Assembly (NCBI RefSeq): GCF_006345805.1
Contig: NC_043000.1
Coordinates: forward strand, 7,378,001 to 7,442,000
Origin: Octopus sinensis
Taxonomy: Eukaryota
Direction: 5' to 3'
Length of the DNA stretch: 64,000 bases
Shown: piece after piece, positions 1,251 through 64,000 of the stretch
How positions within the stretch are numbered: position 1 is the stretch's first letter
How the letters are laid out: the number at the start of each line of letters is the position of its first letter
Notes under the pieces: model-generated
Seen by the model: only the letters and a program-made list of their open reading frames with translations
Database searches by the model: none
What the model was told of the DNA's origin: nothing
Translations under genes and position numbers: made by a program

Positions 1251-1393
1251 CTACAAGAAGTATCTCCCAGTGAGGAAGCTTTATTAAACAAAGATGTAGT
1301 TCTCAGTGGAAATACTACTCCAAAACATGTAATGCTGACGGAACCTGATACTACCAGCCAAGACCTTATTCTTATAAACCCAGAAGCTGAACG
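1251..1393 (+). CDS. HSF1: Heat shock factor, internal coding exon (regulatory region, LQEVSPSEEALLNKDVVLSGNTTPKHVMLTEPDTTSQDLILINPEAER)
   Basis: Acceptor ttccattcttttag|CTA and donor CG|gtaaga. 143 nt, open in phase 0 to 2. The split codon CG+T joins in frame to the exon at 8751. Confidence 0.75.
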
Positions 1394-4393
1394 GTAAGAC
1401 AGTTTTTCTTCATCTAGACTTTAATCTACCCTGATATATTTAATAATTCCGGTGTGGGATGTTATAGTTTAGGGAATGGGGACTTACGATAATTTCTAAT
1501 GTTAATACAAATGTTGTTTAGTTTTCACATTGTTGGGCATTTTTTTCTGTGCAGTGTGATGCACTTCTATTCACTTCCCTGTCGAATCTGTCCCAGTTTT
1601 TCAGAATTTTTGGAGTTTGTTTCTTTATTGTACCCAGAATCCAAAGTATCGTTATGCATTGGTTGACCAGAACTAGTAGCCAGATTACACCACATGTATG
1701 TTGACAACTGTCACGGGAGAGAGTTTCTTTCACTGTGCCATTTCATTCAAGTTTAAGACGTTACGAAAATTATTCTTTTTTCTGACAGGTTTTGTGACAT
1801 AGTGGACCCAATGAAACAGTAAGTTATACACATACAAATGAGTTTGTGAAATTTTCCTTCTACTTTTACTTTGATGTTCCTTAAGGTTTTTATATTTCTG
1901 TTAATTCTTCATACAACTGTGTATTTGTATTACAATATTAAAAGGACACTATGGTCACTACGATGTTTAGTACATGCTTATAAGCTATCTGGAAAGTCCT
2001 TTAAATTTGTTTAAATTTAGATATCTCATTATTCTTTTCCCCCAATGTTTATTACTTCTGTTTATGTTTTGTAGTGTGCAATATTTGGCAGCTTATAGTC
2101 ATTAAAACCAGGATATTTCTATGCCAGTCGTTCTTTGGGTATCTATTATTTTTGTTTGTGACAAAAAATCACTACTATTATCTGGAATATTTTTCAAGCT
2201 TTTCTCTGTCATTGAATTGAACATGTGGTTGCTTAATTCATTATAGTTAATTATCCACTATTTATTATAATTCTAAGCTTAGCTATTTAGTGGCTTTCCT
2301 CTACCAATTCTTTATTTAGTTTATTGGACTTAGTACCTTGTTGCTCTTGCGATGTTTAATGTTTTTGTTTACAACAATGGATAGCGACACCAGCATTAAG
2401 AGTCATACATCTGGGTTTTATTTCTTGTATCATAGAGCCATTATTTTCATAGCTCTCTCATTGTTTTTCACTGCTTCAAACCATCTGCACAGACGCCTGC
2501 TTCATTGGCTTGATTTATTGCATTCTCATCCTATTACAGTTATATTTTATATTCAACACTCATTATGAAAACTTGTATTATACACATCTCATGCAAACAT
2601 GTTTCCCAAAATATTTGTTCACTTTTCTGTCTGTTTTTCTCTCCTAGCATGGGTTAGATGAATATGTTATGAAGGCATTGTTTTACAGCTGGATATCCTT
2701 CCTGTTACTAAACCTTACCTGATTTTCAAGTAGGGGATCTCTTATTTCACATCTTCCAAGGCGCAAAGCCTGCAGACAATTTGACAGGGGAAATGACAAT
2801 TTCATTTCTTGTGGCTGAGCAGTTATCAAGAAGTGCAAATGTAAACTCACACATACATGTTTATATTTATACACACAATGGGCTTCTTTCAGTTTCCTGT
2901 TTACCATTTTCCCTTCACAAGAGTTTTGGTTGGCTTAGGACTCTAGCAGAATATACACCTGCCCAAACTTCACAGTGTGACTGAACTCAAAGCGAATCGG
3001 CTGAGAACCAAACTTCTAAATCAAACATCCATGCCTGAAAAAGCTGGAAAGCAGTATATAATTACCTGTGGAATTTAGCTAATGAATGACAGATCTTCTA
3101 TAATAATTATTTCACCTGCTAAAACACCACCCATAAAATTTTGTTCTATGCAATACTGCTTCAAATGTATCTTTACACATCATCACATGGAATCTTATCT
3201 TAGGAAAGAAACCTGAACAATGTTTTTTTTATGTATATTGTACTTATTTGTTGTTAGCATATTATTTCAGTTTTTAGTCCTAGCTAAAATTAAAACCAAA
3301 AAAATAAAAATAAAAAAAACTAGCTCAGTTTTGTCAAAGATTGCTTTCTTTAAAAGTCTCTCGTAAGTAAAGAAATTATTCTTTTAAGCTGTATTGATAT
3401 TTGTTCAAGTTCAAATCCCACTGAAATCCACTTAGCCTTTCGCCCTTCCTGGGTCAATTAAAGCACCAGTCAAGATCTGGGGTTGATTTAATTGACCGTC
3501 CTGACCCCTTTCCTGTCTATGGCCTTGTATCAGTTTGAAATCAATATTTATTTACCGAGTGTTTTGCTGTGGTTTGTTCTTATGCACAAGCATGAGCATA
3601 ATTTCTTGCATTCAAGCATGAATTTTGAAAGATTTTATGTGCATGCATGTACACATGTGTTCAAAGGAGATTTAAGTTTGTATGAAGATAATCCTTAACA
3701 TGATTGGTAATACAGGATATTCCCTCAGCATCTCTAACATTATGGAAATGTTGTGTTACTGAAAAATCTTGCTCTAACAAGGAATTCTGTAGGGTAAAAC
3801 CTATTTTCCATTGGCTTCTATGTTGCATAGAAGTCAGTAGAAAATATTCTTTGCATTACAGAAGTCAGCATTATATTAAGGTTTTCAGCAACACAATGAT
3901 TCCAGGACATGAAAGGATGCCTATAGATTTTTTAAAGTTGAGTTATATTGAACAAAAGATGATAATATGAGACCTTTCATTGCTAGACCTAGTCAGATCG
4001 TGAGGATAATGTAGTATTTGGGAATAATTTCATCCTTGAAGCTGTGAACTTCTTATATAATTAGGTTTTGTTCGACTGACTGATTGTTATTGTATTTGAA
4101 GAAATCTAATTTGTTCTCCCCAACTCCCCACCAAAAAAGAAAAATAGTTTTGAATTTTCTGTTTGTCTTGTTTCACAATATGAATTAATAACATACATCA
4201 ATATCCACATGAACTGTTTTTTTTTTTTAAAGAACTGCCAGCTTGAGTATTCAGAGTTTCTAAACCAGTGGATCCCAAAACGTTTTCAATAGAAATATTA
4301 TGTTGATTCATGAAAAGATTTTTGTAATTTTAATTTAAAAAAAAAACAAAACAAATTCTACTTCGACAATTCTTGTGATATATTAAGGTAATG

Positions 4394-8750: not shown

Positions 8751-8862
8751 TGAAGCTCTGGCTGAACAACTTGATTCAATACAAAATGATTTGGATGGTC
8801 TCCAAGGAATGCTATCAGATTCTAGTTCCACCTACAACTTGGATACCAATACTTTATTGTCT
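8751..8862 (+). CDS. HSF1: Heat shock factor HR-C exon (EALAEQLDSIQNDLDGLQGMLSDSSSTYNLDTNTLLS)
   Basis: Acceptor tttttacttcag|T and donor TCT|gtaagt. The peptide aligns by eye with the human HSF1 HR-C exon as I recall it ([34 protein letters not shown]), with the same intron phases. Confidence 0.88.
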
Positions 8863-10549
8863 GTAAGTTGAATTTTTAAAAAAAATTAATTCCATAACTT
8901 GTGTTGACTATTTGATAATATGTTTAAAAATAGGTTTTATCTTGAGACAAAACTGATTTGGATTTTTGATAAATCGAGGGTAAAAGAAATTGGATAGAAA
9001 ATAGTTTTCACTTTTGAGAAATTCATTCTTGTGATCAAGATTATATATTATACAGACTAGTGGTTCCTAACATTTCTCAAAACATTAGATAAACTTGTAT
9101 AAGAAATTGAAATATTGTAACTAGGATTGCTTATTGAATAAAATTAGGGAAAAATATTTTTAAAATATTAGAATAACAAACCTACTTTTTTTAGTGGTTT
9201 CAAATCCATTTTTTCCTCCCACTTTAGTGGCGTGATATATTTATCAGGGCAGTTATTGGTGCTGTTTTAGCATGCAGTCTACTGCAGTGTCCACAGCCTA
9301 TGCTGTCAAATGATTTGATCTAGGTTAGGGGTTACGTTTAGGGTTAGAGTTAGACCACATGCTTAAGTGTAAATGGCCAGGTAGAGTACATACCAGGAAC
9401 CCTATTATTTTTTTAGTTGGATGCCCTTTCTGCTCCTAACCACTCAGCCATGAAATAAATGTAGGCTTTCAAAATCTGAACTTTGAACTTAGCTTGGTAG
9501 TAGCCCAGTACTTGAAATCTTTTGTGACTGTGTTGCAGTTAATTTTAAAATAATGAAGAATCTGGAGGTATTTTGTGAAATAACCAAGTTCATTCGTTAA
9601 TTGGAATATAAATAGTTGTTAATTTATTATACAAAAATTGCAGTAGGTTTTAATTTGGATATGAAATCTTTATAGCAGTAAGTTTTGTCTTATAGAACCA
9701 AAGCAGTGAGAGTGTCTCAGCTGTGTTGGTATAAAACTATTTAAACTCCAAAATGGTTTGTAGGCTGAAAAGTTAAACTCCTAAACATTTTTGTGTTTCT
9801 AACATTAATTTTCATTCATTTAAACTATTTGAATCTAAGTTCTATTGATGTGTGCATGTGTACATCCACACATCCATATCTAAATATTACTTCTTCATTG
9901 AGTAAATATAATTTGAAATTTTGACAGTCTTATTACTAATGATGGGACAGATTAAGTTTCATAATCACCAGTGTTTCTAATTAATGTATTAATAACTTGA
10001 ATATCCAACAGAAACATTTACCCATTCAACCTTTTTTTTTTTTTTACCTTATACCTCTGATAATTTATGGGTTTTGTACATGTTCCTACAGTCTATAGTA
10101 TTAAGTGGACAAAGAAAATCTTCACCCAGATAGATGCTAACTCTGTTATAGATAAACTTATTCATAAAGTCTGATACTTATTTTCTTGTGAAATACATCA
10201 AGGTAGACTCTGCTAAGTACCTTGACCCGTTTATGTAATGTCAGGTATTCACTGTTCAACACAAACTTGCATGCTGGCATCTTATCTGCATAGCCATTGC
10301 ATCTCACAGCCTATACAGCTATCTTTTTACCTTTACCTCTGCTCCAGATACAAATTTCTCCCCCCCCCCCACACACATCAGCTTTTGGTCCATAGTCTCA
10401 AACTCTCTCTCTCTTTCTCACCACTACTGTAATAGCCTCTACTCCACTCCTTGGTGTTGGCTGGTCTTGTACCACCTCCTCTTCAGCACCCTAGACTCAC
10501 TTGTCTTTCCTCCTCCCATCACTCATACACCACCCCGATCAGATGCTGC

Positions 10550-15560: not shown

Positions 15561-16579
15561 GACCATGAAGCTGTCTGAATTACAGGAAATTGAGAGAATG
15601 TAAGAATTTTGTTGCTTTATTCTTTTTTTCCCCCCTTTTCAGAATGATCATGATAATATACTAACATAAAGTAAACTTAAAAAACATGTTTTTTAACTAA
15701 GCTAAAATAAAAAAAACAGCAGTTGCAGTGGGTGATTTATTCTTTGCCCACTCAATAAAACTGCCAGTGTGACTCTGATGTCAGTTTATATTTAGAATAT
15801 AAATGCAGAAGCATTGAGAAATATGTAGATAAGTAATTTAAAGATGTAATTTGAAGGAAATTCAGTTGTAAATAATAGCTTGTAATAATATATTGGGTTC
15901 TTAGAGGCATTTCGTCTGCCTTTGTGTTCTGAGTTGAAATTCTGCAGAAGTTGACTTTGCCTTTCATTCTTTTGAGGTCGATCAAATAAGTCCAAGTCAA
16001 GGACGAGGGGTCAATGTAATCGACTTACTCCCTCCCCTGATATTATTGGCCTTGTGCTAAAATGTGAAACCATTAATATATTGGGTTAAATCACTTTGAT
16101 TGGGAAAAAAAAATGACCGAAAGTTTGTGGCTTTTGAGTAGACTTGGATTTGGTTGATATAAACTGAAAGAAGCCCATCATTTGTGTGCGTGTTTGTGCA
16201 GCCCTGTTTTGACATTGCATGATAGTTGTAATTGAATGTCACTGTCATAAAAGTAATGTCGTTTGTTTCCAATTTTCCATGATAACATGTCTAGTCATGG
16301 GAAAATATTACCTTGGTTACAAGCAAGTAAGGATTGGTGACAGGAAGGGCATCCAACTGTAGAAAATCTTCCCCAGCAGATTCTGTCTGATCCATACAAG
16401 CATTGAAAAGTGAACATTCGAATGATTGTGATGATTATATTACAAGATCATAGATTTAGTTTTGGGGAACAGTATGTAGGAATTGAACCTGTATGGCAGC
16501 CTTTGTTTCCTGTATCATTATCTGCTCATGAACTATGGGTTCCTGCCCCTGACTTCATCTATGTAGAGCTAAAAAGACT

Positions 16580-16717
16580 GAGCCAGTAAATAGTGTTGTT
16601 GTTTCTTGATCAGGTCATTCTTGATCAAGCAGGCCTTTCATCAAAGATGTTCTCGCTTTAACCATCCCTTCTTTATTTAGAAGTAATATCAGACTGTTAT
16701 ATGATGTGTTGTTGTTG

Positions 16718-16780
<63 letters not shown>

Positions 16781-18377
16781 TGTTTTCCATACTGACATTG
16801 GTTGGACAGCTTGACAGGAACTGGCAAGGACAGTGACTGCAGCAGGTTCCATAATCCATTTTGGCTTGGTTTCTATGGTTGGATGCCCTTCCTAATGTCA
16901 ATCACTTTACAGAGTGTATTGGGTGCTTTTTATGTGGCCCCTTGGTTTTAGGGTTTCAATTATTCCTTTTATTTTTTCCAAGACAGTATGGTGTAAGGAG
17001 AAGGAAAATTGACTGCTATTTCCTGGACGTCAAATACCCCATTCTCGTTTTTGATCAGTAGACCAAATTTCTTGACTAGTTTAACATCCGCACTTGACCC
17101 TTGGGTACCTTCAGCAGAGTCCTCTCTGCTGCAAGTCCCTTCTATTTAACCAAGTTTCTGTTCTGAGGACAAGTTCCTGTCCTTTTGCCAGTCACTGAGC
17201 CCTTGCAAAGGATCATAGGGGTCTACCCTTTTGCCTTTCACTAGCCCCTTAAAAATCATCTTGATTGTATTTCACTGCATCTAATGAAAATAACTTTAGC
17301 TCATCTGCCGATTTTAGACACTAAATAGCTTATTGAACAACGTGTATATATAAACAAACTTACATTTGTTTTTATTAGAAGCATTGAATGGGTATTGTAC
17401 GATACAAACAAGGAGGTAATTTACCCATTATTTCAGCAGTTCTAACGGCAATGCTGTGTTCGAAACAAATATCACCTTGTTTGTATCATACATTGCTGCT
17501 GCTTTACTGTCATGTCGCTTCACACCTCTAACTTGTACATCACACTGTCCATTCTTAGTTGATTCCCTTCTTTATTCTATACACTCACGCAATGCTTATG
17601 AAGTTCCAGCCCTAAATTAGATTGTGTATAACTTGGGTATAGAATATGTACACTCTAAGTTGGAATATAAACTGTCCTATAGGGGTCATATTTTTGACAT
17701 CACAAGGCTTTACACTCTGATACTCAGTACTTTGCTTTCTCTCTCTCTCAAGTTTTATCAAAAGTAATGCTGTGAAGAAAATAAATAAAAGATAAATGGC
17801 TAGAAGAAATAAGGGAAAAAAATCAAGAAATATGTATGCAGGTACATGTTTACAGAAGCTTACATAGAGATATGTGCAGATTTTTACCATCTTTAAAAAT
17901 GTTTCTTTTGGTGTAGATGATGCAAAAATGTATGAAAATACAATGAAAAAATAGATGACTTCAAGGAATAACAGTGTAAAATTTCAGTTGTGAAACAGAT
18001 TTCCATATCTGAAGATCTTTTCTAAGTACATGTGTTTAGATGGAAACTTTTAGTATTTATTTAGTAGTAACTCTTATTTATTAAATTAAACTAGATATTC
18101 TATTAGCACAAATCCCAAATAGAAAATTATGTACACAGAACCACCCCTGGGAACTGAACCAAACATCTGCTGCAAATCCAGACAACACTACACTGATTCG
18201 CCAACACTACACCTGATTTTCTCCCCTCCATACTCACGCAAACATGTATCTGACTCATACACTGTTCACTTTCCAGACATTTCTACATTACTACATATAA
18301 ATTATACACACTTTTAACAAGTTGTGGTGCACCTGAGCACTGTATACAATAATTTCATTATTATTTTATTATTATAA
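16580..18377 (+). repeat. Copy A of a roughly 1.8-kb inverted duplication (partner 54789-57088)
   Basis: Near-identical reverse complement. The ORF track shows mirrored ORFs (17612..17890- vs 55109..55387+; 16861..17061+ vs 55938..56138-). Confidence 0.97.
18195..18372 (+). mobile_element. CR1-like LINE 3' UTR fragment with (ATT)n tail
   Basis: Matches 32000-32135, the 3' UTR that follows the CR1-type ORF2 end. Confidence 0.7.
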
Positions 18378-18994
18378 ATTTTATAGACTGCATAAGCACA
18401 AATCTAACTGGAAATAATTGTGCCCATGGAATTGAACCACACATACACAAGCAATAGGCTTCTGCACAGTTTCCCCTTCAACAAAATTTCACTCACAAAG
18501 CATTGGTTAACACAAGTCTTGTTGAAGACAACTTGCCCAATGAACCACTCAGAGCTGTGGGGTTGTGTGAAGTGAACTTATTAATCATGTAACCATGACA
18601 GTATCTAATTTTCCAGTTGCTCTCCCAGAAATTTTGTTATTTTTGTGTTCAGTGAAGTTCTTTTTAAAAGATATATTTCTAACAAATTATGTTTGCAAAC
18701 ACTTTAAGACATCTATTAGTTATGTCAGTGGATTAATAGCTACATACATTGCAAACACTTATTGCACTTTTGATATTCTTTTCTACTCTAGGCACAAGGC
18801 CCAAAATTTTGGGGGAGGCGGGGGGCGCAGTCGATTAGATCGATCCCAGTACGCAACTGGTACTTAATTTATCAACCCCAAAAGAATGAAAAACAATGTT
18901 GACCTCAGCAGAATTATACCGCTAAGCATTTTGCCTAACATGCTAACGTTTGTGCCAGCTCATCACCTTCTTGCATTTTTAATCTGAAGAACAT

Positions 18995-20663: not shown

Positions 20664-22596
20664 TCATCATCGTTTAATGTCAGTTTTCTGCGCTAGCACG
20701 GGTTGGACGGTTCGACTGGGGTCCGGGAAGCTAGGGGCTGCACCAGGCTCCAGTCTGATCTGGCAGAGTTTCTACAGCTGGATGCCCTTCCTAACGCCAA
20801 CCACTCCGCGAGTGTAGTGGGTGCATTTTACGTGCCACCTGCACAGGTGCCAGGGGGGTCCGGCATCGGCCACGATCGGTTGGAGCTTTTAACGTGCCAC
20901 CAGCATGGAGGCCAGCCAAGGTGGTGCTGGCAACGGCCACGTTTGGATGGTGCTTTTTATGTGCTACCGGCACAGAAGCCAGTCAAGGCGGCGCTGGCAA
21001 TGGTCACGTTCGGATGATGCTTTTTATGTGCCACCTGCACAGGTATCACAACTACTATTTCCATTGATATTTGTTTTGATGTTCATGTACATGCACTTGA
21101 CTCAACAGGTCTCCTCAAGAACAGCGAGACGTTCCGGGTTCCAGGGTACTTTGAATGGGCAGGGGCTATGCGGAACTGGTGCAGGAAGCAGCCCAGGTCT
21201 TTGCAGTCACAGCATATCTCCAGAGATCTCAGTCCTTCGCCATTGCCTCAGTGAGGCTCAATGCTCTGAGGTCATGCTTGACTACCTCATCCCATGTCTT
21301 CCTGGGTCTACCTCTCCCCCTGATTCCTTCAACTGTTTGGGAGCGGCACTTCTTCACACATCTCTCCTCATCCATCCGCAGTACACGACCATACCATTGC
21401 AAGCGTCGCTCTTGCACACCACATCTGATGCTTCTTATGTCCAGCATTTCTCTCAGGGTGCTTACACTCTGTCGTGCGTGCACACTGACATTACACATCC
21501 AGCGGATCATGCTAGCTTTATTTCTTTCAAGTCTATGCATATCCTCCTTAGTCACAGCCCATGTTTCACTACCGTGAAGCATGGCAGTTCGCACACATGC
21601 ATCATACAATCTACCTTTCATTCTGAGCGAGAGACCCTTTGTCGCCAGTAGGGGTAGGAGCTTTCTGAACTTTGCCCAGGCTATTCGTATTCTAGTGGTG
21701 ACACTCTCCGAGCATCCACCTCCACTACTAACTTGGTCACCCAGGTAGCGGAAACTATCAACTACTTCTAGTTTCTCCCCCTGGAGTGTGATGGAATCTG
21801 TTTTCTGAGTGTCTGTGGTGTCTATTGTCCCTGTGCATCTGCCACACATGAAAGCTATCTTATCAGTTAATTTCCCTTTGATGTTGCTGCACCTCTTATG
21901 CGTCCATAGCTTACACTGGGTGCATCTTATGGAGTTTCTACCTACACCTTTCCTACAGATCGAGCAGGGCCACCTGCCCGATGGGGTGTGTGCTGAGTTC
22001 GCCTTTCTGCTTACTATAACTTTGGTCTTTGCTACATTTACTCTAAGGCCCTTTGATTCTAACCCTTGCTTCCACACCCGAAATTTCTTTTCTAGTTCCG
22101 GTAGTGATTCTGCTATAAGAGCCAGGTCATCAGCATAGAGGAGCTCCCAGGGGCATCCTGTTTTGAATTCCTCTGTTATTGTCTGGAGGACTATGATGAA
22201 TAAAAGGGGACTGAGGGCTGAGCCTTGGTGTGCACCTACTTCTACCCGGAATTCTTCACTATATTCGTTGCCAATCCTAACCTTGCTGACAGCCTCTCTG
22301 TATAGAGCCTGTACAGCCCTTATTAGCCATTCGTCAATCTCCAGTTTCTGCATCGACCACCAGATAATGGATCGGGGAACCCTGTCAAAGGCTTTCTCCA
22401 AGTCCACAAAAGCTATGTAGAGGGGTTTATCTTTAGCTAGGTACTTCTCCTGCAGTTGTCGGACCAGGAATATAGCATCAGTGGTGCTTCTACCCGGCAC
22501 AAAACCGAACTGCATCTCATCTAAGCAAATTCTCTCCCTAATGAGATGGGATTATGACCCTCTCTGTGACCTTCATCACCTGATCTAACAGTAATT
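20664..22596 (-). mobile_element. 5'-truncated RTE-clade LINE with a nearly intact reverse transcriptase (ORF 21229..22515, 428 aa)
   Basis: RT motifs FVDLEKAFDRV, QGSALSP and YADD; RTE C-terminus RGRGRPRKTW; (GAT)n tail at 20664. A +1 frameshift lies just upstream of MQFGF, and a TGA near the C-terminus is probably decayed from CGA. Confidence 0.93.
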
Positions 22597-25309: not shown

Positions 25310-25348
25310 CTTTTCAGTCAAGACACTCCAACTGGATGGCAAGATTCG
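25310..25348 (+). CDS. HSF1: Heat shock factor 39-nt microexon (LFSQDTPTGWQDS)
   Basis: Long U tract ending tttttag|CTT TTC AGT and donor TCG|gtaata. Phase 0-0. LFS matches the LFSP that starts the exon after HR-C in vertebrate HSF1. Confidence 0.75.
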
Positions 25349-26004
25349 GTAATAAATTTTGTGTTCAGTAGTTTTATTTTCATTTCTAACCCAATTCCTG
25401 CCAAGGCCCTCTTAAAACCTCCACACGCTAATTAATGCTCCTGTAAAAGTTTAGGATTTTATCGTTATTTTATTGTCAGCTTCACTATCATCATTTCATG
25501 GAGTGAAAAATGAACCGGCCACCATTTGAAGATGTCTTGTTTATGTAGTGTATTGTTGAGAGCAAATCCGTTTAGCTGAACCAATCTCTCTCTCTCTGAT
25601 ATCGACAACAACAAGAAACCACAAATGTCTCAAGTAGATGAAATGAAGAAAACTTTAAACATGCCACAGATCCACATTACTACCATTCCACAGCTTGTAA
25701 TGCCTCAGAAAAATCAGCTTTTTTTTTTATCTGATAATTCTGTATAATGTGACCAGCTAAAGATTGGAATGGATATTAAAGAAAGTTGTAGAGTTCACAT
25801 CATCTCATTTCTCCTCTTCTATAAATCTGAGCTCTTTTTGGCTATTGGTATTTATGAAGTCACATATCTTTCAATTTGTGAAGTTAAGTTGATGTGCATC
25901 CTTTCTACCAACATGTGTCAGTCCTTGTTTTGTACATTGAATACATGAGGTAATTCATTATAGAAAACCCACTGGCATCTAGTATTAAATTATTATTATT
26001 ATTA

Positions 26005-26460
26005 TTAAGGCTGTGAGCTGACTGAATCGTTAGTGCACCAGACAAAATACTTAGCGGTATTTTGTCCATCGCTTTGGTCTTAATTCAAATCCCACCAAGG
26101 TCGACTTTACCTTTCATCCCTTCAGGGGTCAATAAAATAAATACCAGTTGAACACTGAGGTTGATGTAATCAACTCATCCCCCTTCCCCAAGATTGCTGC
26201 CCTTGTGGCAAAATTTGAAACCATTATTATTATTACTGTTATTATTAAGGTAGCAAGCTAGCAGAGTTGTTAGCATGCCACACAAAATGCTTAGCAGCAT
26301 TCCCTCTGTCTTTACATTCTGAGTTCAAATTCTGCCGAGGTCAACTTTGCTTTTCATCCTTTCGGGGTCGATAAATTAAGTACCAGTTGCATACTGGTGG
26401 TCAATCTGATCGACTGGCCCCCTTCCCCAAAATTTCAGACTTTGTGCCTATAGGAGAAAG
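26005..26460 (+). mobile_element. Two tandem family-A tRNA SINEs
   Basis: Two successive head, B-box and core modules (about 26005-26225 and 26245-26460). Confidence 0.8.
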
Positions 26461-26462
26461 GA

Positions 26463-26515
<53 letters not shown>

Positions 26516-31869: not shown

Positions 31870-32135
31870 CCACAGGAAGCTCCCATGACTTTCGGAAACA
31901 TTTTTTCACGCTAAGAGTTGCTGAAGCATGGAACAAACTGCCGGCATCAGTTGTTAGTTGTCGGAGCACTGCATCCTTCCAAACTTCCATGCTTCCTGAG
32001 ATTCGCCAACACTACACCTGATTTCCTCCCCTCCCCCATACACACGCAAGCATCTATCTGACTCATACACTGTTCACTTCCCAGACATTTGTACATTACT
32101 GCTTTATACGCACTTTTGACAAGTTGTGGTGCAAC
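31870..32135 (+). mobile_element. CR1-like LINE 3' end
   Basis: Translation HDFRKHFFTLRVAEAWNKLPASVV fits the CR1/L2 ORF2 terminal motif FFxxRVxxxWNxLP. Stop at 32021, then 3' UTR. Confidence 0.8.
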
Positions 32136-32288
32136 AACCAGTGTTAAAGCTCCAAATATACACCTTTATTCCCCTTATGCAGATTACCAACAATCTTGCA
32201 TCTCATGTAAAATAGCAAGGGACAGAAAATGCATCATATCAAGGGTGTTCGGACAATACCACTCCTCTCTCAAATTCAAGAATATGCA

Positions 32289-33804: not shown

Positions 33805-34993
33805 TCATCATTGTCATTTAACGTCTGCTTTCCATGGTGGCATGGGTTGAATGGTTTTGATTGAGAACTGGCAAGCTGGGAGGCTGTACCAGGCTCCAAT
33901 CTAATTTGGCAATGTTTCTACAGTTGGATGTATTTCCTAACGCCAACCACTCTGAGAGTGTAGTGGGTGCTTTTTAGGTGCCACCAGAATGGGGGCCAGT
34001 CAGGCAGCACTGGCATCAGCTGCGCTCGAATGGTGTTTTTTTACATGCCACTGGCACAGGTGCCAGTCAGGTTGTACAAGCATCAGTCACACTTGAATGG
34101 TGCTTTTTACATGCCACCAGCACGGGTACTAGTCAGGCGGTACTGGCATCAGCCATGCTTGAATGGTGCTTTCTACGTGCCACCAGCACAGGTGCCAGTC
34201 GAGTGGCACTGGCATTGACCATGGCTATGATTTCACTCAGTGCAACAGGCCTTCACAAGAAACCTCATATTGCCCAATGATTGAAGGGTGCTTTTAAATG
34301 GGCCAGTTTTGCGACACTGGCATTGGCCACGACTACAGTCTCACTTGGCTTGCCAGGTCTTCTCAAGCATGACATATCTCCAAAGGTCTCCGTCACTTGT
34401 CATTGCCTCTGTGAAGCCCAATGTTCAAAGGTCATGTGTCACCAATTCATCCTATGTCTTCCTGAGTCTACCCCTTCCACAGGTTCCCTCTACTATTAGG
34501 GTGTGACAGTTCTTTACACAGCTGTCCTCATCCATATGCAACACATAACCACACCAGCACAGTTGTCTCTTGCATACCACATTTGATGCTTCTTATGCCC
34601 AACTTTTCTCTCAGGGCGTTTATACTCTGTCGTGTATGCACACTGACATTGCTCATCTATTGGAGCATACTAGCTTCATTTATTTCAAGCCTATGCGTGT
34701 CCTCAGCAGTCACAGCCCATGTTTCACTGCCATGTAGCATGGCTGTTTGTACACAGGTCATACAGTCTACCTTTCACTTTGAGGAGAGGCCCTTTGTTAC
34801 CAGCAGAAGTAGGAGCCCTCTCAACTTTGCCCAGGCTATTCTTATTCTAGCAGCTACACTCTCGGAGCATCCACTCCCGCTACTAACTTGGTCACCTAGG
34901 TAACAGAAGCTATCAACTACTTCTAGTTTTCCCCTTGGCATGTGATGGAATCTGTTTTCTTCACATATTTGGTGTTTATTGCACCTCTGCATG
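33805..34993 (-). mobile_element. Second, older 5'-truncated RTE copy with family-C 3' region
   Basis: KLEVVDSFCYLGDQVSSGSGCSESVAARIRIAWAKLRGLLLLLVTKGLS (ORF 34774..34992) is colinear with the 21-kb RTE. Confidence 0.85.
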
Positions 34994-35585: not shown

Positions 35586-35640
35586 CTCCTGACTACTTTT
35601 GATGATCCTAAAGATGAGGATAAAACAGAGAAAGCAAAAG
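35586..35640 (+). CDS. HSF1: Heat shock factor penultimate coding exon (LLTTFDDPKDEDKTEKAK-G)
   Basis: Acceptor ttttttctttttag|CTC and a weak donor AAG|gttttc. 55 nt, phase 0 to 1, which matches the phase-1 acceptor at 37349. Confidence 0.7.
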
Positions 35641-36259
35641 GTTTTCATTAGTTTATATATTTGTAGTTATTTTTTAGTAAAAAAAAAAAAAAAAGTCTTT
35701 GATAATTTGTTACCTAAATTAAATACTATTTTATCTCTGCTTAGGGTGTCTTGGACAAGAAAGGTGAAGTTTGAGTTCAATATTTGCCAGTTAGACTGCA
35801 AAATATATCTGCGATTTCATAATGCCTATTTACAGTTAGGTGGACTAAGTCATTGAACTTTTTAGTATTTCCAGAAATGTAGTGGTTGTCATGTGTTAGG
35901 CTGTCACCTTGTTAATTCCCAGATTCCCAACGTACCACTCAGCAATTACTAGATTTATTTTTTAGATATTCTTCAATAGAGGCATGGTTAAATTTTAAAA
36001 ATCTGATTTTACCTTTTCAGAACTAGAAAACAATTCACTCCTAAGCAGATTTTAACTCTACACAAAGCACAAATACTCCTTACACCAGAATCTCTCTCAT
36101 ATATCTTTGATTGTAAGTGTATTCATCATACGCATGTATATTCTTGACTGTATTCTAAAAAAGTCTTTGCCCATCCTTTCTCCTCTCTAGTTACTTCTCA
36201 GGTATATTTTATCTGTCCAAACTGTGAATGGTGTGAATAACGATACTCAACTGTCTTAA

Positions 36260-37152: not shown

Positions 37153-37348
37153 TTAAATGATGCTTGTAAATTTATGCTAGTGAGATCTAATCTACATAAT
37201 CAGATGCAATGAATCTTTGTAAACGGACTCTTTACTAATCACATCAGCAATGCTTTTGTTGCTCAGTTCCATGTCCCATGTTATTTGTATGTAACATTTG
37301 CTACTCTGCTGTGACTTCTGCTAAATCCATTGTCTATTTATATTTCAG

Positions 37349-37560
37349 GTAATGAACTGATTGCATATCCACAAGAAGATCTCTCCTCTTGGCTGGTCGA
37401 TTCTCCATCTGCTAGCAGTGAATTAAATGATGATATAGACAGCACAATTGATGCGACCTCCTTAGATACTCCTGATTGCAATTTTGACAAAGATTTGGAC
37501 TTTCCATCCTCTTCAGGCAAGAGAAAAAGTAAACGACCAATGCGAATTATTTTGTCATAA
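37349..37560 (+). CDS. HSF1: Heat shock factor last coding exon, acidic C-terminal domain (GNELIAYPQEDLSSWLVD...KRKSKRPMRIILS*)
   Basis: Acceptor tatttcag|GT AAT. GNELIAY corresponds to vertebrate HSF1 GKQLVHY, also after a phase-1 intron. D/E/S-rich, with stop TAA at 37558-37560 (part of ORF 37330..37560). Confidence 0.85.
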
Positions 37561-52949: not shown

Positions 52950-53570
52950 GATGAAGGCAGCGAGATGGCCGAGTGAGTAACACGCTGGACAAAATACTTA
53001 GCAGCATTTCTTCCAGTTTTACATTCTGAGTTCAAGTTCCACGGAGGTCAACTTTGCCCTTCAAGCTTTCAGGGTCAGTAAAATAAGTATCAGTTTAAGG
53101 GGATGAGTTGGTAAAATTGTTAGCACGCAGGACAAAATGCTTAGCAGTATTTCGACCATTGCTACATTCTGAGTTCAAATTCCGCCGAGGTCGAATTTGC
53201 CTTTCATCCTTTCGGGGTTGATTAAATAAGTACCATTTACGCATGGGGTCAATATAATCGACCTAATCTGTTTGTCTGTCCTTGTTCATCTCCTCTGTGT
53301 TTAGCCCCTTGTGGGTAGTAAAGAAATAGGTATTTTGCTCATTGTTACGTTCTGAGTTCAAATTCTTTGCCTTCCATCCTTTCAGGGTTGATGAAATAAG
53401 TACCAGTTACGCACTGGGGTAGATGAAATCGACCTTCCCCCTCCCCCAAATCTCAGGCCTTGTGCCTAGAGTAGAAAAGAAAATAAGTACCAGTTGAGCA
53501 CTGAAGTCAATGTAATTAACTTGCCCCCTCTCTCAAAATGTCAGGTCTTTCTATATTAGAAAGAATTATT
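52950..53570 (+). mobile_element. Nested family-A SINEs
   Basis: The inner element 53096-53479 is flanked by AAAATAAGTA(T/C)CAGTT at 53080-53095 and 53480-53495. Confidence 0.8.
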
Positions 53571-54029
53571 ATTCTACATTTGCAAGACTTGTTAGATTGG
53601 CCAACTCTTCAGCGCATTAACTGAACCATTAGTATCTTAGAGGAGTTATGGCCCTTTACATTCTAACTTCAAGTCCTGTCAAAGCTGACTTCGGCTGTTA
53701 GTCTTCTGGGATCGATAAAATAAAATATTTATTGATATAATGAGCTGTTTTTACCAACAATTTCTGACCTTTTGCTTCTATAAATTATCATAAATAGGTA
53801 CAGGTATGGCTGTGTGGTTAAGAACCTTGCTTCCCAACCATGTGGTCTCAGATTAAATCCCGCTGCATAATACTTTAGGCAAGTGTCTTTTACTATCCCT
53901 GGGTCAACCAGGGATAGTAACCAGGAATTTTTGAGTGGATTCAGTCGACAGAAACTGCTCATTATCTACATATGTACTTGTGTGAGTGTGTTTGTGTGTA
54001 TCCTTGTCTTGACATGTATGATTGTAAAT

Positions 54030-54251
54030 AAGGCGGCGAGCTGGCAGAAACGTTAGCTCGCCGGGTGGAATGCGTAGCCGTATTTCGTCTGATGTTACGT
54101 TCTGAGTTCAAATTCCGCCGAGGTCGACTTTGCCTTTCATCTTTTCGGGGTCGATTAAATAAGTACCAGTTACGCACTGGGGTCGATATAATCGACTTAA
54201 TCCGTTTGTTTGTCCCCTCTGTGTTTAGCCCCTCGTGGGTAGTAAAGAAAT
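54030..54251 (+). mobile_element. Young family-A SINE with a 16-bp TSD
   Basis: TSD ATGTATGATTGTAAAT at 54014-54029 and 54252-54267. CpGs are intact. Confidence 0.93.
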
Positions 54252-54457
54252 ATGTATGATTGTAAATGAGCATTACCATCAGACAAACATTGTTGTTCCT
54301 CAGTCTCCCATGAATAACATGTTTGGGCATGGGGAAATATTACCTTGCTTAGAAACAAGTGAGGATAGGTGACAGGAAGGGCATCTGACATTAGAAAAAT
54401 CCACCTTAACAAATTCTATCTGACCCATGCAAGCATAGAAAATTGAATGTTAATATC

Positions 54458-54689
54458 TGTTTCTTTATTGCCCACAAGGGGCTAAACACAGAGGGGACAA
54501 ACAAGGACAGACAAACGGATTAATCGATTACATCGACCCCAGTGCGTAACTGGTACTTAATTTATCGACCCAGAAAGGATGAAAGGCAAAGTCGACCTCG
54601 GCGGAATTTGAACTCAGAACGTAACGGCAGACGAAATACGGCTACGCATTTCGCCCGGCGAGCTAACGTTTCTGCCAGCTCGCCGTCTT
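54458..54689 (-). mobile_element. Young family-A SINE with a 17-bp TSD
   Basis: TSD AATTG(A/G)ATGTTAATATC at 54441-54457 and 54690-54706. Confidence 0.93.
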
Positions 54690-54788
54690 AATTGGATGTT
54701 AATATCATTTATGGTTATGCATTATCAGACTGACCTCAAGAGTTTATCCTAGCCATTACATCTCAAAAACATCCTATGAAAGAGGTTC

Positions 54789-57088
<2,300 letters not shown>

Positions 57089-57837
57089 CTATGGCCTTTC
57101 ACCTGTGTGCTGTTCTGTAACCATCTGGGTGGCAGCAATGAGAAAACTTATCTGTATTTGCACACGGTCTTTGTTGATACAGACAAGACACATATATCTG
57201 CGAATACTCTAGTTTCTCCTCTCCCTGAGCAGATAAATCTTTTGCCTATAAACACAGATACACCATACAAACTATAAGAATAGCTGCTATTCTTTAACAT
57301 GTTTCCTCCATACAGGCTGCAAGAACAGCTGCTCTGCGTATCGCCTGGCCATTACATCTCAAGAACATTCTAAAAATGGTATATATTTCCCTAGTTGCCA
57401 ATCTATGTACTTTATATGGTACACCTATTTAAGTAGCAGCGACACTATGAGATACTTTGAATAAACCTATGATTTCTGTAATAACCTCAGGGAATCTTTA
57501 TCCTGTTTCTGTACACTCTCAAATTAACAGCCTTGTATGGCCTAACCTTCTGTCTGTTACGACGACCAGTGTTCCAGTTGATCCAATCAATAAACCGCCT
57601 GCTTGCGACATTAACGTGCAAGTGGCTGAGCACTCCACAGACACACTTACCGTTTACATAGTTCACGGAGATTCAAAGGGACACACTGAATGGGACGAGA
57701 CTGGTCCATTGATCTAAAGGTACGACTCATTTTTGTCAGCTGAATGGACTGGAGTAACATGAAATAAAGCATCTTGTTCAAGGACACAATACGCCGCCGG
57801 GAGTCGAACTTACGATCATGAACCGAATACACTAACC

Positions 57838-58054
57838 TATTTCTTTATTGCCCACAAGGGGTTAAACACATAGAGGACAAACAAGGACAGACAAAGGGAT
57901 TCAGTCGATTACATCGACCCCAGTGCGTAACTGGTACTTATTTAATCGACCCCGAAAGGATGAAAGGCAAAGTCGACCTCGGCGGAATTTGAACTTGGAA
58001 AAACCACGAAGCATTTCGCCCGGCGTGCTAACGTTTCTGCCAGCTCGCCGCTTT
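57838..58054 (-). mobile_element. Young family-A SINE inserted in the tRNA head of a family-D SINE
   Basis: Perfect 17-bp TSD AACCGAATACACTAACC at 57821-57837 and 58055-58071. Confidence 0.92.
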
Positions 58055-58603
58055 AACCGAATACACTAACCACTAAGCCACTCACCTTAAAAGCCCTGAA
58101 TAGCAACAACCTTAAAACTCTCCATTGTTATCTCAACTTATCTAATTTATCTTATTTGGTATTACTCCGTTTATTTTGCTTCATTTATCACCTTTCTACC
58201 ATCCAACATTCACCAGTTATTTATTTACCTTACTATTATTCAATAATTACATTATTCATTTGCTTATCATCAACAATGGTATTTACAGGCGAGCATGTGC
58301 TCTAGGCATGCAATAATATACATACATGTGTATTTATGTATTGCACATGTCATGGGTATAAACTCAAAACTACTCAGGTGTCAAAACGCATCAGGAAATG
58401 TTATATGTATGAGTTACTCCCCTTCAATAATCAAACTTCAAAATGTCATATTTCTTATATTCCAGAAAGACAGCGAGCTGACAGAAATTGACATTTCTTC
58501 CGGCTCACATCACGTTCAGAGTTCAAATCCCGCTAAAGTCGATTTTGCCTTTCATCCTTTTGGGTTTGATAAAATAAAGTTCCAATCTAGTATTTGGGGG
58601 TTG

Positions 58604-62571: not shown

Positions 62572-64000
62572 TGGTGCCATGTAAAAAGCATGTGTGCCAG
62601 TGCTATGTAAGAAGTGCTTGCTTTGGTTCTATGTAGAAAAACAATTGTTTGGGGCCAAGTAAAGAGCATTTGTGCCAGTGTTATGTAAGAAGTGCTTGCT
62701 TTGGTTCTATGTAGAAAAACAATTGTTTGGGGCCAAGTCAAAAGCATGTGTGCCAGTGCTATGTAAAAGTGCTTGCTTTGGTTCTATGTAGAAAAACAAT
62801 TGTTTGGGGCCAAGTAAAGAGCATTTGTGCCAGTGTTATGTAAGAAGTGCTTGCTTTGGTTCTATGTAGAAAAACAATTGTTTGGGGCCAAGTAAAGAGC
62901 ATTTGTGCCAGTGCTATGTAAGAAGTGCTAGCTTTGGTTCTATGTAGAAAAACAATTGTTTGGGGCCAAGTAAAAAGCATGTGTGCCAGTGTTATGTAAG
63001 AAGTGCTTGCTTTGGTTCTATGTAGAAAAACAATTGTTTGGGGCCAAGTAAAGAGCATTTGTGCCAGTGTTATGTAAGAAGTGCTTGCTTTGGTTCTATG
63101 TAGAAAAACAATTGTTTGGGGCCAAGTAAAGAGCATTTGTGCCAGTGTTATGTAAGAAGTGCTTGCTTTGGTTCTATGTAGAAAAACAATTGTTTGGGGC
63201 CAAGTAAAGAGCATTTGTGCCAGTGCTATGTAAGAAGTGCTAGCTTTGGTTCTATGTAGAAAAACAATTGTTTGGGGCCAAGTAAAAAGCATGTGTGCCA
63301 GTGTTATGTAAGAAGTGCTTGCTTTGGTTCTATGTAGAAAAACAATTGTTTGGGGCCAAGTAAAGAGCATTTGTGCCAGTGTTATGTAAGAAGTGCTTGC
63401 TTTGGTTCTATGTAGAAAAACAATTGTTTGGGGCCAAGTCAAAAGCATGTGTGCCAGTGCTATGTAAAAAGTGCTTGCTTTGGTTCTATGTAGAAAAACA
63501 ATTGTTTGGGGCCAAGTAAAGAGCATTTGTGCCAGTGCTATGTAAGAAGTGCTAGCTTTGGTTCTATGTAGAAAAACAATTGTTTGGGGCCAAGTAAAAA
63601 GCATGTGTGCCAGTGTTATGTAAGAAGTGCTTGCTTTGGTTCTATGTAGAAAAACAATTGTTTGGGGCCAAGAAAAAAGCATTTGTGCCAGTGCTATGTA
63701 AGAAGTGCTAGCATTGGTTCCATGAAGAAAAACACTTGTTTGGGGCCAAGTAAAAAGCATGTGTGCCAGTGCTATGTAAAAAGTGCTTGCTTTGGTACCA
63801 TGAAGAAAAACACTTGTTTGGGGCCAAGTAAAAAGCATGTGTGCCAGTGCTATGTAAGAAGAGCTTGCTTTGGTTCTATGTAGAAAAACAATTGTTTGGG
63901 GCCAAGTATAAAGCATTTGTGCCAGTGCTATGTAAGAAGTGCTTGCATTGGTTCCATGAAGAAAAACACTTGTTTGGGGCCAAGTATAAAGCATGTGTGC
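62572..64000. repeat. 78-bp tandem satellite, at least 18 units, running off the window end
   Basis: Unit GTAAAGAGCATTTGTGCCAGTGTTATGTAAGAAGTGCTTGCTTTGGTTCTATGTAGAAAAACAATTGTTTGGGGCCAA. The 26-aa periodicity of ORF 62759..63994 mirrors it. Confidence 0.97.

Follow-up and report, generated by a model that had tools for sequence, protein, structure and literature searches.

In trans-mobilisation of the L1 type, which yields processed pseudogenes, orphan transductions and templated sequence insertion polymorphisms, a host RNA is copied by the machinery of a long interspersed nuclear element (LINE) and integrated as a 5′-truncated piece with a tail and a target-site duplication. With stringent LINEs, the standard way of mobilising foreign RNA is that it borrows the 3′ end of the LINE (PMC3747384; PMC8665684). 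Thousands of recently active retroelement insertions, including 787 of CR1 and 1129 of Dong-R4, are known from Octopus vulgaris (PMC13282606). Here we analysed 64,000 nucleotides of its sister species Octopus sinensis (assembly GCF_006345805.1, contig NC_043000.1, positions 7,378,001 to 7,442,000), hereafter the window, in which a segment of an intron of the heat shock factor (HSF) gene, copy A, has an inverted counterpart, copy B, at a distance of 36.8 kb. The two copies are a real and young inverted repeat pair. Our preferred explanation, to which we give slightly less than an even chance, is that A and B are two separate insertions of one young non-autonomous composite retroposon, about 1.8 kb long and non-coding.

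A repeat search and blastn of the whole window linked A and B by three collinear inverted blocks (Table 1). In the global alignment the copies are 99.4 % identical, with 10 substitutions in approximately 1640 aligned bases (0.6 %), so the first-pass annotation was right to describe a near-identical inverted copy at these positions with about ten substitutions. The four indels are located in the microsatellite block, the 162-nt stretch and the terminal ATT tract, and the lengths add up from A to B as 1798 + 669 − 162 − 5 = 2300. Across 1.6 kb there are no single-base indels between the copies. The homology ends sharply on both sides; an extension past either end was considered and rejected, as the flanks outside are not alignable. 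A 35-mer taken from the 1.4-kb match has exactly two occurrences in the window where 0 are expected, and this count, together with the 99.3 % identity of the match, rules out chance as the source of the likeness.

Regarding its content, the shared segment is a mosaic of old repeats and about 1.1 kb that has no other match in the window. The old repeat pieces are 67–90 % identical to their relatives in the window, against 99.4 % between A and B, which argues that the composite was recently copied as one piece. The first ~130 nt have no other match in the window and are followed by a microsatellite and a fragment of an abundant family, whose six other copies each start at a CAT/TCA array. The (CAT)n array counts about 20 units in A and, expanded more than 12-fold in a pair diverged by 0.6 %, 245.7 pure units in B. 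The first-pass annotation had described an (ATT)n tail at one end of the segment. This needs a correction: the long trinucleotide array is (CAT)n/(GAT)n and internal, and the terminal (ATT)-like tract measures just ~22 nt in A and ~17 nt in B.

No coding function could be assigned by the searches. The open reading frames (ORFs) of the shared segment had no Pfam family match, the 92-aa ORFs within the two copies had no counterpart on record in an exact look-up, and a homologue search with a pseudo-protein joined from 13 ORFs of A and both B flanks gave no match. Rfam and tRNA scans of the window were also without match, and exact-pattern scans of metagenome contigs returned 0 matches. Within copies of the abundant family mentioned above, 66–67-nt tandem repeats are present at 20862-21042 and 33966-34215.

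The segment starts with GAGCCAG... and ends with ...TTATTATAA. A k-mer comparison of the flanks showed that each copy is bracketed by a short direct repeat in the same geometry, AGACTG in the case of A and TCCTATG in the case of B. With random boundaries in the window, the chance of such a flanking repeat is 0.013 per locus for the 6-mer and 0.004 for the 7-mer, and the joint chance is ~5e-5, or conservatively ~3e-3 when hindsight is allowed for. This suggests that both copies are insertions of one discrete unit. Because the copies of AGACTG stand directly at the 5′ end of A and at the close of its A/T run, A resembles an insertion with the same two ends as B and not a randomly truncated native intron. 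The abrupt end opposite to the tail had been likened to a 5′ truncation; abrupt it is, but A shares this end and carries the flanking AGACTG, so a random truncation appears less likely. Target-site duplications do persist in this sequence, since short interspersed nuclear element (SINE) insertions near B show clear ones of 16–17 nt, intact in three of the four tRNA-like copies. Terminal inverted repeat DNA transposons, Helitrons and long terminal repeat elements were also considered and rejected: there are no terminal inverted repeats, no 5′-TC...CTRR-3′ and no TG...CA ends.

One further direct repeat was noticed around B. It is 65 nt long, occurs at only two sites in the window (54718-54786 and 57318-57380; core 29 nt, 26/29 identical) and its alignment score is ~7 standard deviations above shuffles. 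Its two copies stand outside B, one stopping 2 nt before the left end and the other beginning 229 nt beyond the right end. The identity of ~75–90 % is too diverged for this repeat to have arisen together with B.

At the tail end, the first-pass annotation had let the segment end exactly at the (ATT)n tail of a CR1 fragment. What holds is that a CR1-like fragment in sense orientation to HSF lies near the end of A, and that the A/B homology stops in a short A/T tract. The exact coincidence is weakened, as the CR1-like homology ends 34 nt earlier and the second CR1-like copy of the window (Y2) lacks the tract. The fragment is 86–90 % identical to 32000-32144 in Y2, and the ORF tail directly before that part of Y2 reads FFTLRVAEAWNKLPASVV..S..F. 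We take both for CR1 on the strength of the ORF2-end motif FF..RV...WN.LP..VV of bird CR1, which is a lead and not a test; a Pfam search gave no match supporting the assignment. ATT/AAT tracts are common: the 64 kb contain ~32 that measure 9 nt or more, and such tracts act as tails of other retroposons in the window. From ~18386 a different repeat starts, and the right boundary of A is therefore a junction of two repeats at a short A/T run. Comparison of the CR1-like 3′ untranslated region (3′UTR) with the 3′ ends of ATT-tailed SINEs revealed nothing convincing: of six comparisons, five were at chance level and one was borderline (3 of 300 shuffles).

We favour two insertions because A and B have the same two ends to the base and both are bracketed by direct repeats, and because an A/T tract that differs in length between the copies follows a sense LINE-like 3′UTR piece. 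A 3′ end in a simple-repeat tail of copy-dependent length (22 versus 17 nt) is what is expected of retroposition. The unit would consist, in this order, of ~130 unmatched nt, a (GTT)n(CAT)n array resembling a variable number tandem repeat (VNTR), the abundant-repeat fragment, 1.1 kb of unmatched sequence, a CR1-like ORF2 end with 3′UTR and an A/T-rich (ATT)-like tail. Copying would go through RNA, with a LINE reverse transcriptase carrying out target-primed reverse transcription, and each insertion would leave a target-site duplication of 6–7 nt, which is how we read the flanking repeats, and a tail of its own length. The HSF intron would be a mere landing site, and the "CR1 tail" of the first-pass annotation would be the element's own 3′ end. 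Further copies, including a master, would be expected elsewhere in the genome. The predicted empty site of A before the insertion is ...CTAAAAAGACTGCATAAGC..., and that of B is ...ACATCCTATGGCCTTTCACC... with a 7-nt duplication or ...AAAGAGGTTCCTATGGCC... with a blunt insertion. No paralogous empty site was found in the window; the left flank of A is not significantly similar to the sequence beside a related repeat at 43.4–43.6 kb, and the immediate flanks of B have no other match in the window.

Several observations weigh against this explanation. The tail is not firmly tied to the LINE: the CR1-like homology stops 34 nt before the segment end, and Y2, the only other CR1-like copy in the window, departs from A beyond 18343/32144, with no ATT tract in the 150 nt that follow. 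Folded as RNA, 18262-18377 and 18195-18377 were no more stable than shuffles (z = +0.6 for both), so no 3′ hairpin is predicted. The established 3′ signature of CR1 is a hairpin plus a microsatellite, which the element's own reverse transcriptase recognises (PMC8665684, citing Suh 2015). Moreover, the flanking repeats are short and their geometry was set after inspection, and in B no repeat directly abuts the tail, as TCCTATG is offset by 10 nt (GAACCTCTTT, not A/T). Finally, the window shows only two copies of the unit and holds no older or truncated relatives of the 1.1-kb core. For two members to lie 37 kb apart, the family would have to be large, with hundreds to thousands of copies, or insertion would have to favour a hot spot.

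The strongest competitor, which we consider rather unlikely, is a local inverted duplication at the DNA level. In this case A would be native intron, and a stalled fork or a break at the B site would have been repaired with 1.8 kb of the nearby A as template, in inverted orientation, either by template switching (fork stalling and template switching/microhomology-mediated break-induced replication, FoSTeS/MMBIR) or by synthesis-dependent capture; an imprecise polymerase would also explain the skip of 162 nt, the microsatellite changes and the blunt junctions. So short a distance between source and copy would be usual in replication-based events and a very improbable result of random retroposition, and templated and inverted insertions are well documented in the literature. 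The scars agree with it too: no repeat lies directly at the tail of B, one B junction is blunt (0 nt of microhomology) and the other shows 2 nt (TC), a 2-nt microhomology also accompanies the internal 162-nt deletion, and four indels accompany the ten substitutions. An inverted pair of the tRNA-like SINEs (54026-54195 and 54524-54693, 94 % identical, 328-nt spacer) lies 95 nt from B and may be a fragile site. A nearby template, microhomology of 0–2 nt and extra scars are what templated insertions are expected to show, but none of these features is mechanism-specific. A local duplication leaves to chance that the boundary falls inside an A/T tract after a sense LINE-like 3′UTR, for which we estimate 1–5 % given the number of ATT/AAT tracts. 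It also does not explain the direct repeats in the same geometry around both A and B, nor the coincidence that the right boundary of A is the start of a different repeat.

The first-pass annotation had itself proposed that CR1 machinery copied HSF pre-mRNA, and named a multi-copy composite element or a DNA-level duplication as alternatives. These alternatives now rank above the proposal, which is unsupported as it was stated and which we regard as improbable. A LINE reverse transcriptase would have recognised the old CR1 fragment or its tail in the HSF pre-mRNA and copied the upstream intron until a random stop 1.8 kb upstream, giving B. The orientation is suitable, as the intron that holds A belongs to a + strand gene and the CR1-like fragment points the same way. 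The end of B falls within the A/T tract, which is shorter and purer than in A, and a 7-nt repeat flanks B; in the sister species, LINE machineries including that of CR1 have been active recently (PMC13282606). The direction of copying fits as well. Since Y2 at 32 kb runs unbroken across the 18261/18262 point of A, the 162 nt are ancestral and B carries the deletion, and both substitutions that could be polarised against repeat relatives (16828 and 18294) are derived in B. However, in a genome of ~2.7 Gb a random integration would by our own estimate fall as near as 37 kb to its source with a chance of ~3e-5, the flanking repeat of A and the identical 5′ ends become pure chance (p ~0.01), and the RNA of introns stays in the nucleus and does not last long. 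The CR1-like piece is moreover old, judging by its identity to Y2, it has no predicted hairpin, and its link to the ATT tract is unproven.

The substitution pattern does not favour copying from pre-mRNA either. All ten are transitions, with only one at a CpG; at the transition fraction of 0.65 found in older repeat pairs of the window, this has P = 0.013. From A to B there are four G>A, three A>G, two C>T and one T>C changes. Read as C:G>T:A, six changes fall in B and four in A, with no hint that either copy is overloaded. An ADAR-edited template for B was considered and is not supported, as there is no A-to-G excess. A variant of the pre-mRNA copying, retro-duplication in cis, appears to us a little more doubtful still. 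There, a LINE reverse transcriptase recognising an (AUU)n-tailed LINE 3′ fragment would have taken nascent HSF pre-mRNA and integrated the 1.8-kb copy 37 kb away; if true, nuclear unspliced RNA near the nick can be a template and retroposition has a local bias.

We hold it to be very improbable that the pair is an assembly artefact, in which the A region contributed an allelic or chimeric piece that was misplaced and inverted at 55–57 kb. The 0.6 % substitutions, the microsatellite length differences and the 162-nt indel do resemble allelic variation, and a perfectly pure trinucleotide array of 737 nt is unusual. Against this, B is set on both sides in sequence without other match in the window, with sharp junctions, and the absence of single-base indels in 1.6 kb implies a good consensus quality. 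Known long-read artefacts are adjacent palindromes and not a 2.3-kb block 37 kb off. An inversion with staggered breaks was rejected, as the HSF exons at ~25.3, 35.6 and 37.3 kb are collinear with those at 1.3 and 8.8 kb and the interval is thus not inverted.

Table 1. Coordinates of the inverted pair, its parts and flanks, the HSF exons and neighbouring SINEs in the window
Feature	Position	Strand	Description	Basis
Copy A	16580-18377	+	1798 nt common with B; inside HSF intron	repeat search, blastn, global alignment
Copy B	54789-57088	-	2300 nt; reverse complement of A	repeat search, blastn, global alignment
Inverted block 1	16580-16780 with 57088-56888	inverted		repeat search, blastn
Inverted block 2	16722-18101 with 56277-54898	inverted	99.3 %, 1380 nt, no gaps	
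Inverted block 3	18262-18369 with 54899-54791	inverted		repeat search, blastn
AGACTG left of A	16575-16580	+	overlaps first base of shared segment	
AGACTG right of A	18385-18390	+	directly after end of A's A/T-only run	
TCCTATG left of B	54772-54778	+	10 nt outside B's tail end	
TCCTATG right of B	57087-57093	+	overlaps B's last 2 nt, i.e. its 5′ end in sense orientation	
Internal microsatellite in A	16708-16780	+	(GTT)5, then (CAT) ~20 units; 73 nt	
Internal microsatellite in B	56219-56955		(GTT)2(CAT)245.7; 737-nt array of perfect GAT/CAT units, listed for the + strand	Tandem Repeats Finder, purity 100 %
Window-wide repeat family fragment	16753-16942	+	starts at (CAT)n/(TCA)n array; six other window copies, 67–73 % identical	
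Unmatched core	16943-18099	+	~1.1 kb; no other window match, no protein-family match	
A-only stretch	18100-18261	+	162 nt, absent from B; B junction with 2-nt CT microhomology	
CR1-like fragment	18195-18343	+	last 22 nt of ORF2 and first ~125 nt of 3′UTR; crosses A-only/shared boundary	
A/T-only run	18351-18384	+	contains (ATT)3TT(ATT)2ATAA; A/B homology ends inside, at 18377	
Second CR1-like copy (Y2)	31902-32144	+	ORF tail ...FFTLRVAEAWNKLPASVVSCRSTASFQ...EIRQHYT*, then 3′UTR	
HSF coding exon	1251-1394	+	aa 305-352 of O. sinensis isoform X2, 100 % identical	
HSF HR-C exon	8751-8862	+	aa 353-389; AG/GT splice sites; last exon upstream of A	
Small HSF exon	25310-25350 (approximate)	+	aa ~390-402; first exon downstream of A	
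HSF exon	35586-35642	+	aa 403-421	
Last HSF coding exon	37348-37557	+	aa 421-490	
Young tRNA-like SINE, four copies	54026-54257, 54453-54693, 57837-58056, 53095-53334		head GACGGCGAGCTGGCAGAAACGTTAGC...	

The host gene was identified through the exon at 8751-8862, which codes for the HR-C motif of HSF. A search of protein representatives led to HSF of Argonauta hians, and a further search to "heat shock factor protein isoform X2 [Octopus sinensis]". This protein and that of O. vulgaris match the window exons at 100 % identity (1251-1394, 8752-8862, 35586-35642 and 37348-37557), and in the protein-to-window comparison all exons found are on the + strand. By these matches the window holds the 3′ part of HSF. 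The placement of the segment in an HSF intron by the first-pass annotation is confirmed, as exons on both sides of A are matched by the HSF protein: the site of A is the intron between 8862 and ~25.3 kb, and the site of B is ~17 kb past the HSF stop codon. A tblastn search with human HSF1 found no DNA-binding-domain exon in the window, and a homologue search with the 42-aa exon returned no candidate.

HSF gene ranges are 140–168 kb in O. sinensis, O. bimaculoides and O. vulgaris. Short HSF isoforms are annotated in Argonauta (393 aa) and O. vulgaris (391 aa), and their length fits an end just after the HR-C exon. The Argonauta isoform, the one inspected, ends 6 aa beyond this exon and apparently reads into the intron. 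In the window (8751-8868), reading on past the HR-C exon reaches a stop after 2 codons.

The neighbourhood contains further repeats. At 21229-22515 on the - strand, an open ORF of 428 aa has an RVT_1 domain (E = 2.7e-25) and a weak PHD-like zinc finger; it represents a LINE fragment that lies antisense in the same HSF intron as A, with a related copy near 34.5–34.9 kb. SINE copies are arranged head-to-tail at 25989-26513, so that the (ATT)n tract of one is directly followed by the start of the next, which suggests SINE insertion into ATT/TAA microsatellites; this kind of insertion is known for Dong/R4-type LINEs. An 18-nt minisatellite with 47 copies and 93 % matches is present at 295-1136, ends ~115 nt upstream of the HSF exon at 1251 and keeps an ORF of 312 aa open. 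A 78-nt tandem repeat at 62572-64000, whose copies number at least 18 at 94 % identity, continues beyond the window end and contains an ORF of 411 aa on the - strand.

The pair probably arose in an ordinary way, from a composite retroposon that was active recently or from a local duplication, and its interest is modest, residing in the bracketing of the last HSF exons and in the pure 246-unit (CAT)n array. Whichever the origin, inverted arms of 1.4 kb at 99.3 % identity bracket the last three HSF coding exons, which would be inverted if the arms recombined; the resulting factor would end after the HR-C exon. If stress-induced read-through reaches 57 kb, the arms could pair as long double-stranded RNA, as the first-pass annotation suggested for read-through in general; ADAR editing is very active in this animal. 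If the unit is a family, its VNTR-like (CAT)n array (~20 versus 246 units) would belong to a composite retroposon of very young age, a useful marker of current Octopus retroelement activity; if not, it would be an ordinary small segmental duplication.

Compared with known systems, the closest analogue of copying from pre-mRNA is the L1-type trans-mobilisation described above. Its products, however, are dispersed genome-wide and derive from mature poly(A) RNA under relaxed poly(A) recognition, whereas here the template would be intronic and the copy next door. In the staggered-break inversions of Drosophila two inverted copies bracket an interval, as A and B bracket 37 kb, but there the interval is inverted and here it is not. 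FoSTeS/MMBIR insertions share with the pair the kb-scale inverted copy of nearby sequence, the microhomology of 0–2 nt and template-switch-like scars; their boundaries are arbitrary, whereas here one boundary lies in a retroelement-type tail and both copies have flanking repeats. The CR1-like fragment is similar to the 3′ ends of CR1-clade LINEs in its sense orientation, in the short microsatellite-like tract that follows it and in the CR1-like ORF2-end motif beside Y2. It differs in that no reverse transcriptase or endonuclease domain adjoins either fragment copy, no significant hairpin is predicted, and the tract is ATT-like instead of the amniote octamer and is missing from the homologous position of Y2. 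In contrast to SINEs, the unit is far longer (1.8 kb) and has no evident Pol III promoter. In contrast to SINE/LINE pairs, its last 34 nt and the tract are not shared with Y2, the sole LINE copy compared, and the flanking repeat of B is offset by 10 nt. To non-autonomous retroposons with a LINE-derived 3′ end, such as the partners of CR1, L2 and RTE, the unit is similar in having no coding capacity, an end related to a LINE 3′UTR and a simple-repeat tail (PMC3747384). The short flanking direct repeats and the composite build from older repeats are further features that it has in common with them. Its internal tandem array can be likened to that of the primate SVA elements, whose VNTR changes length between copies.

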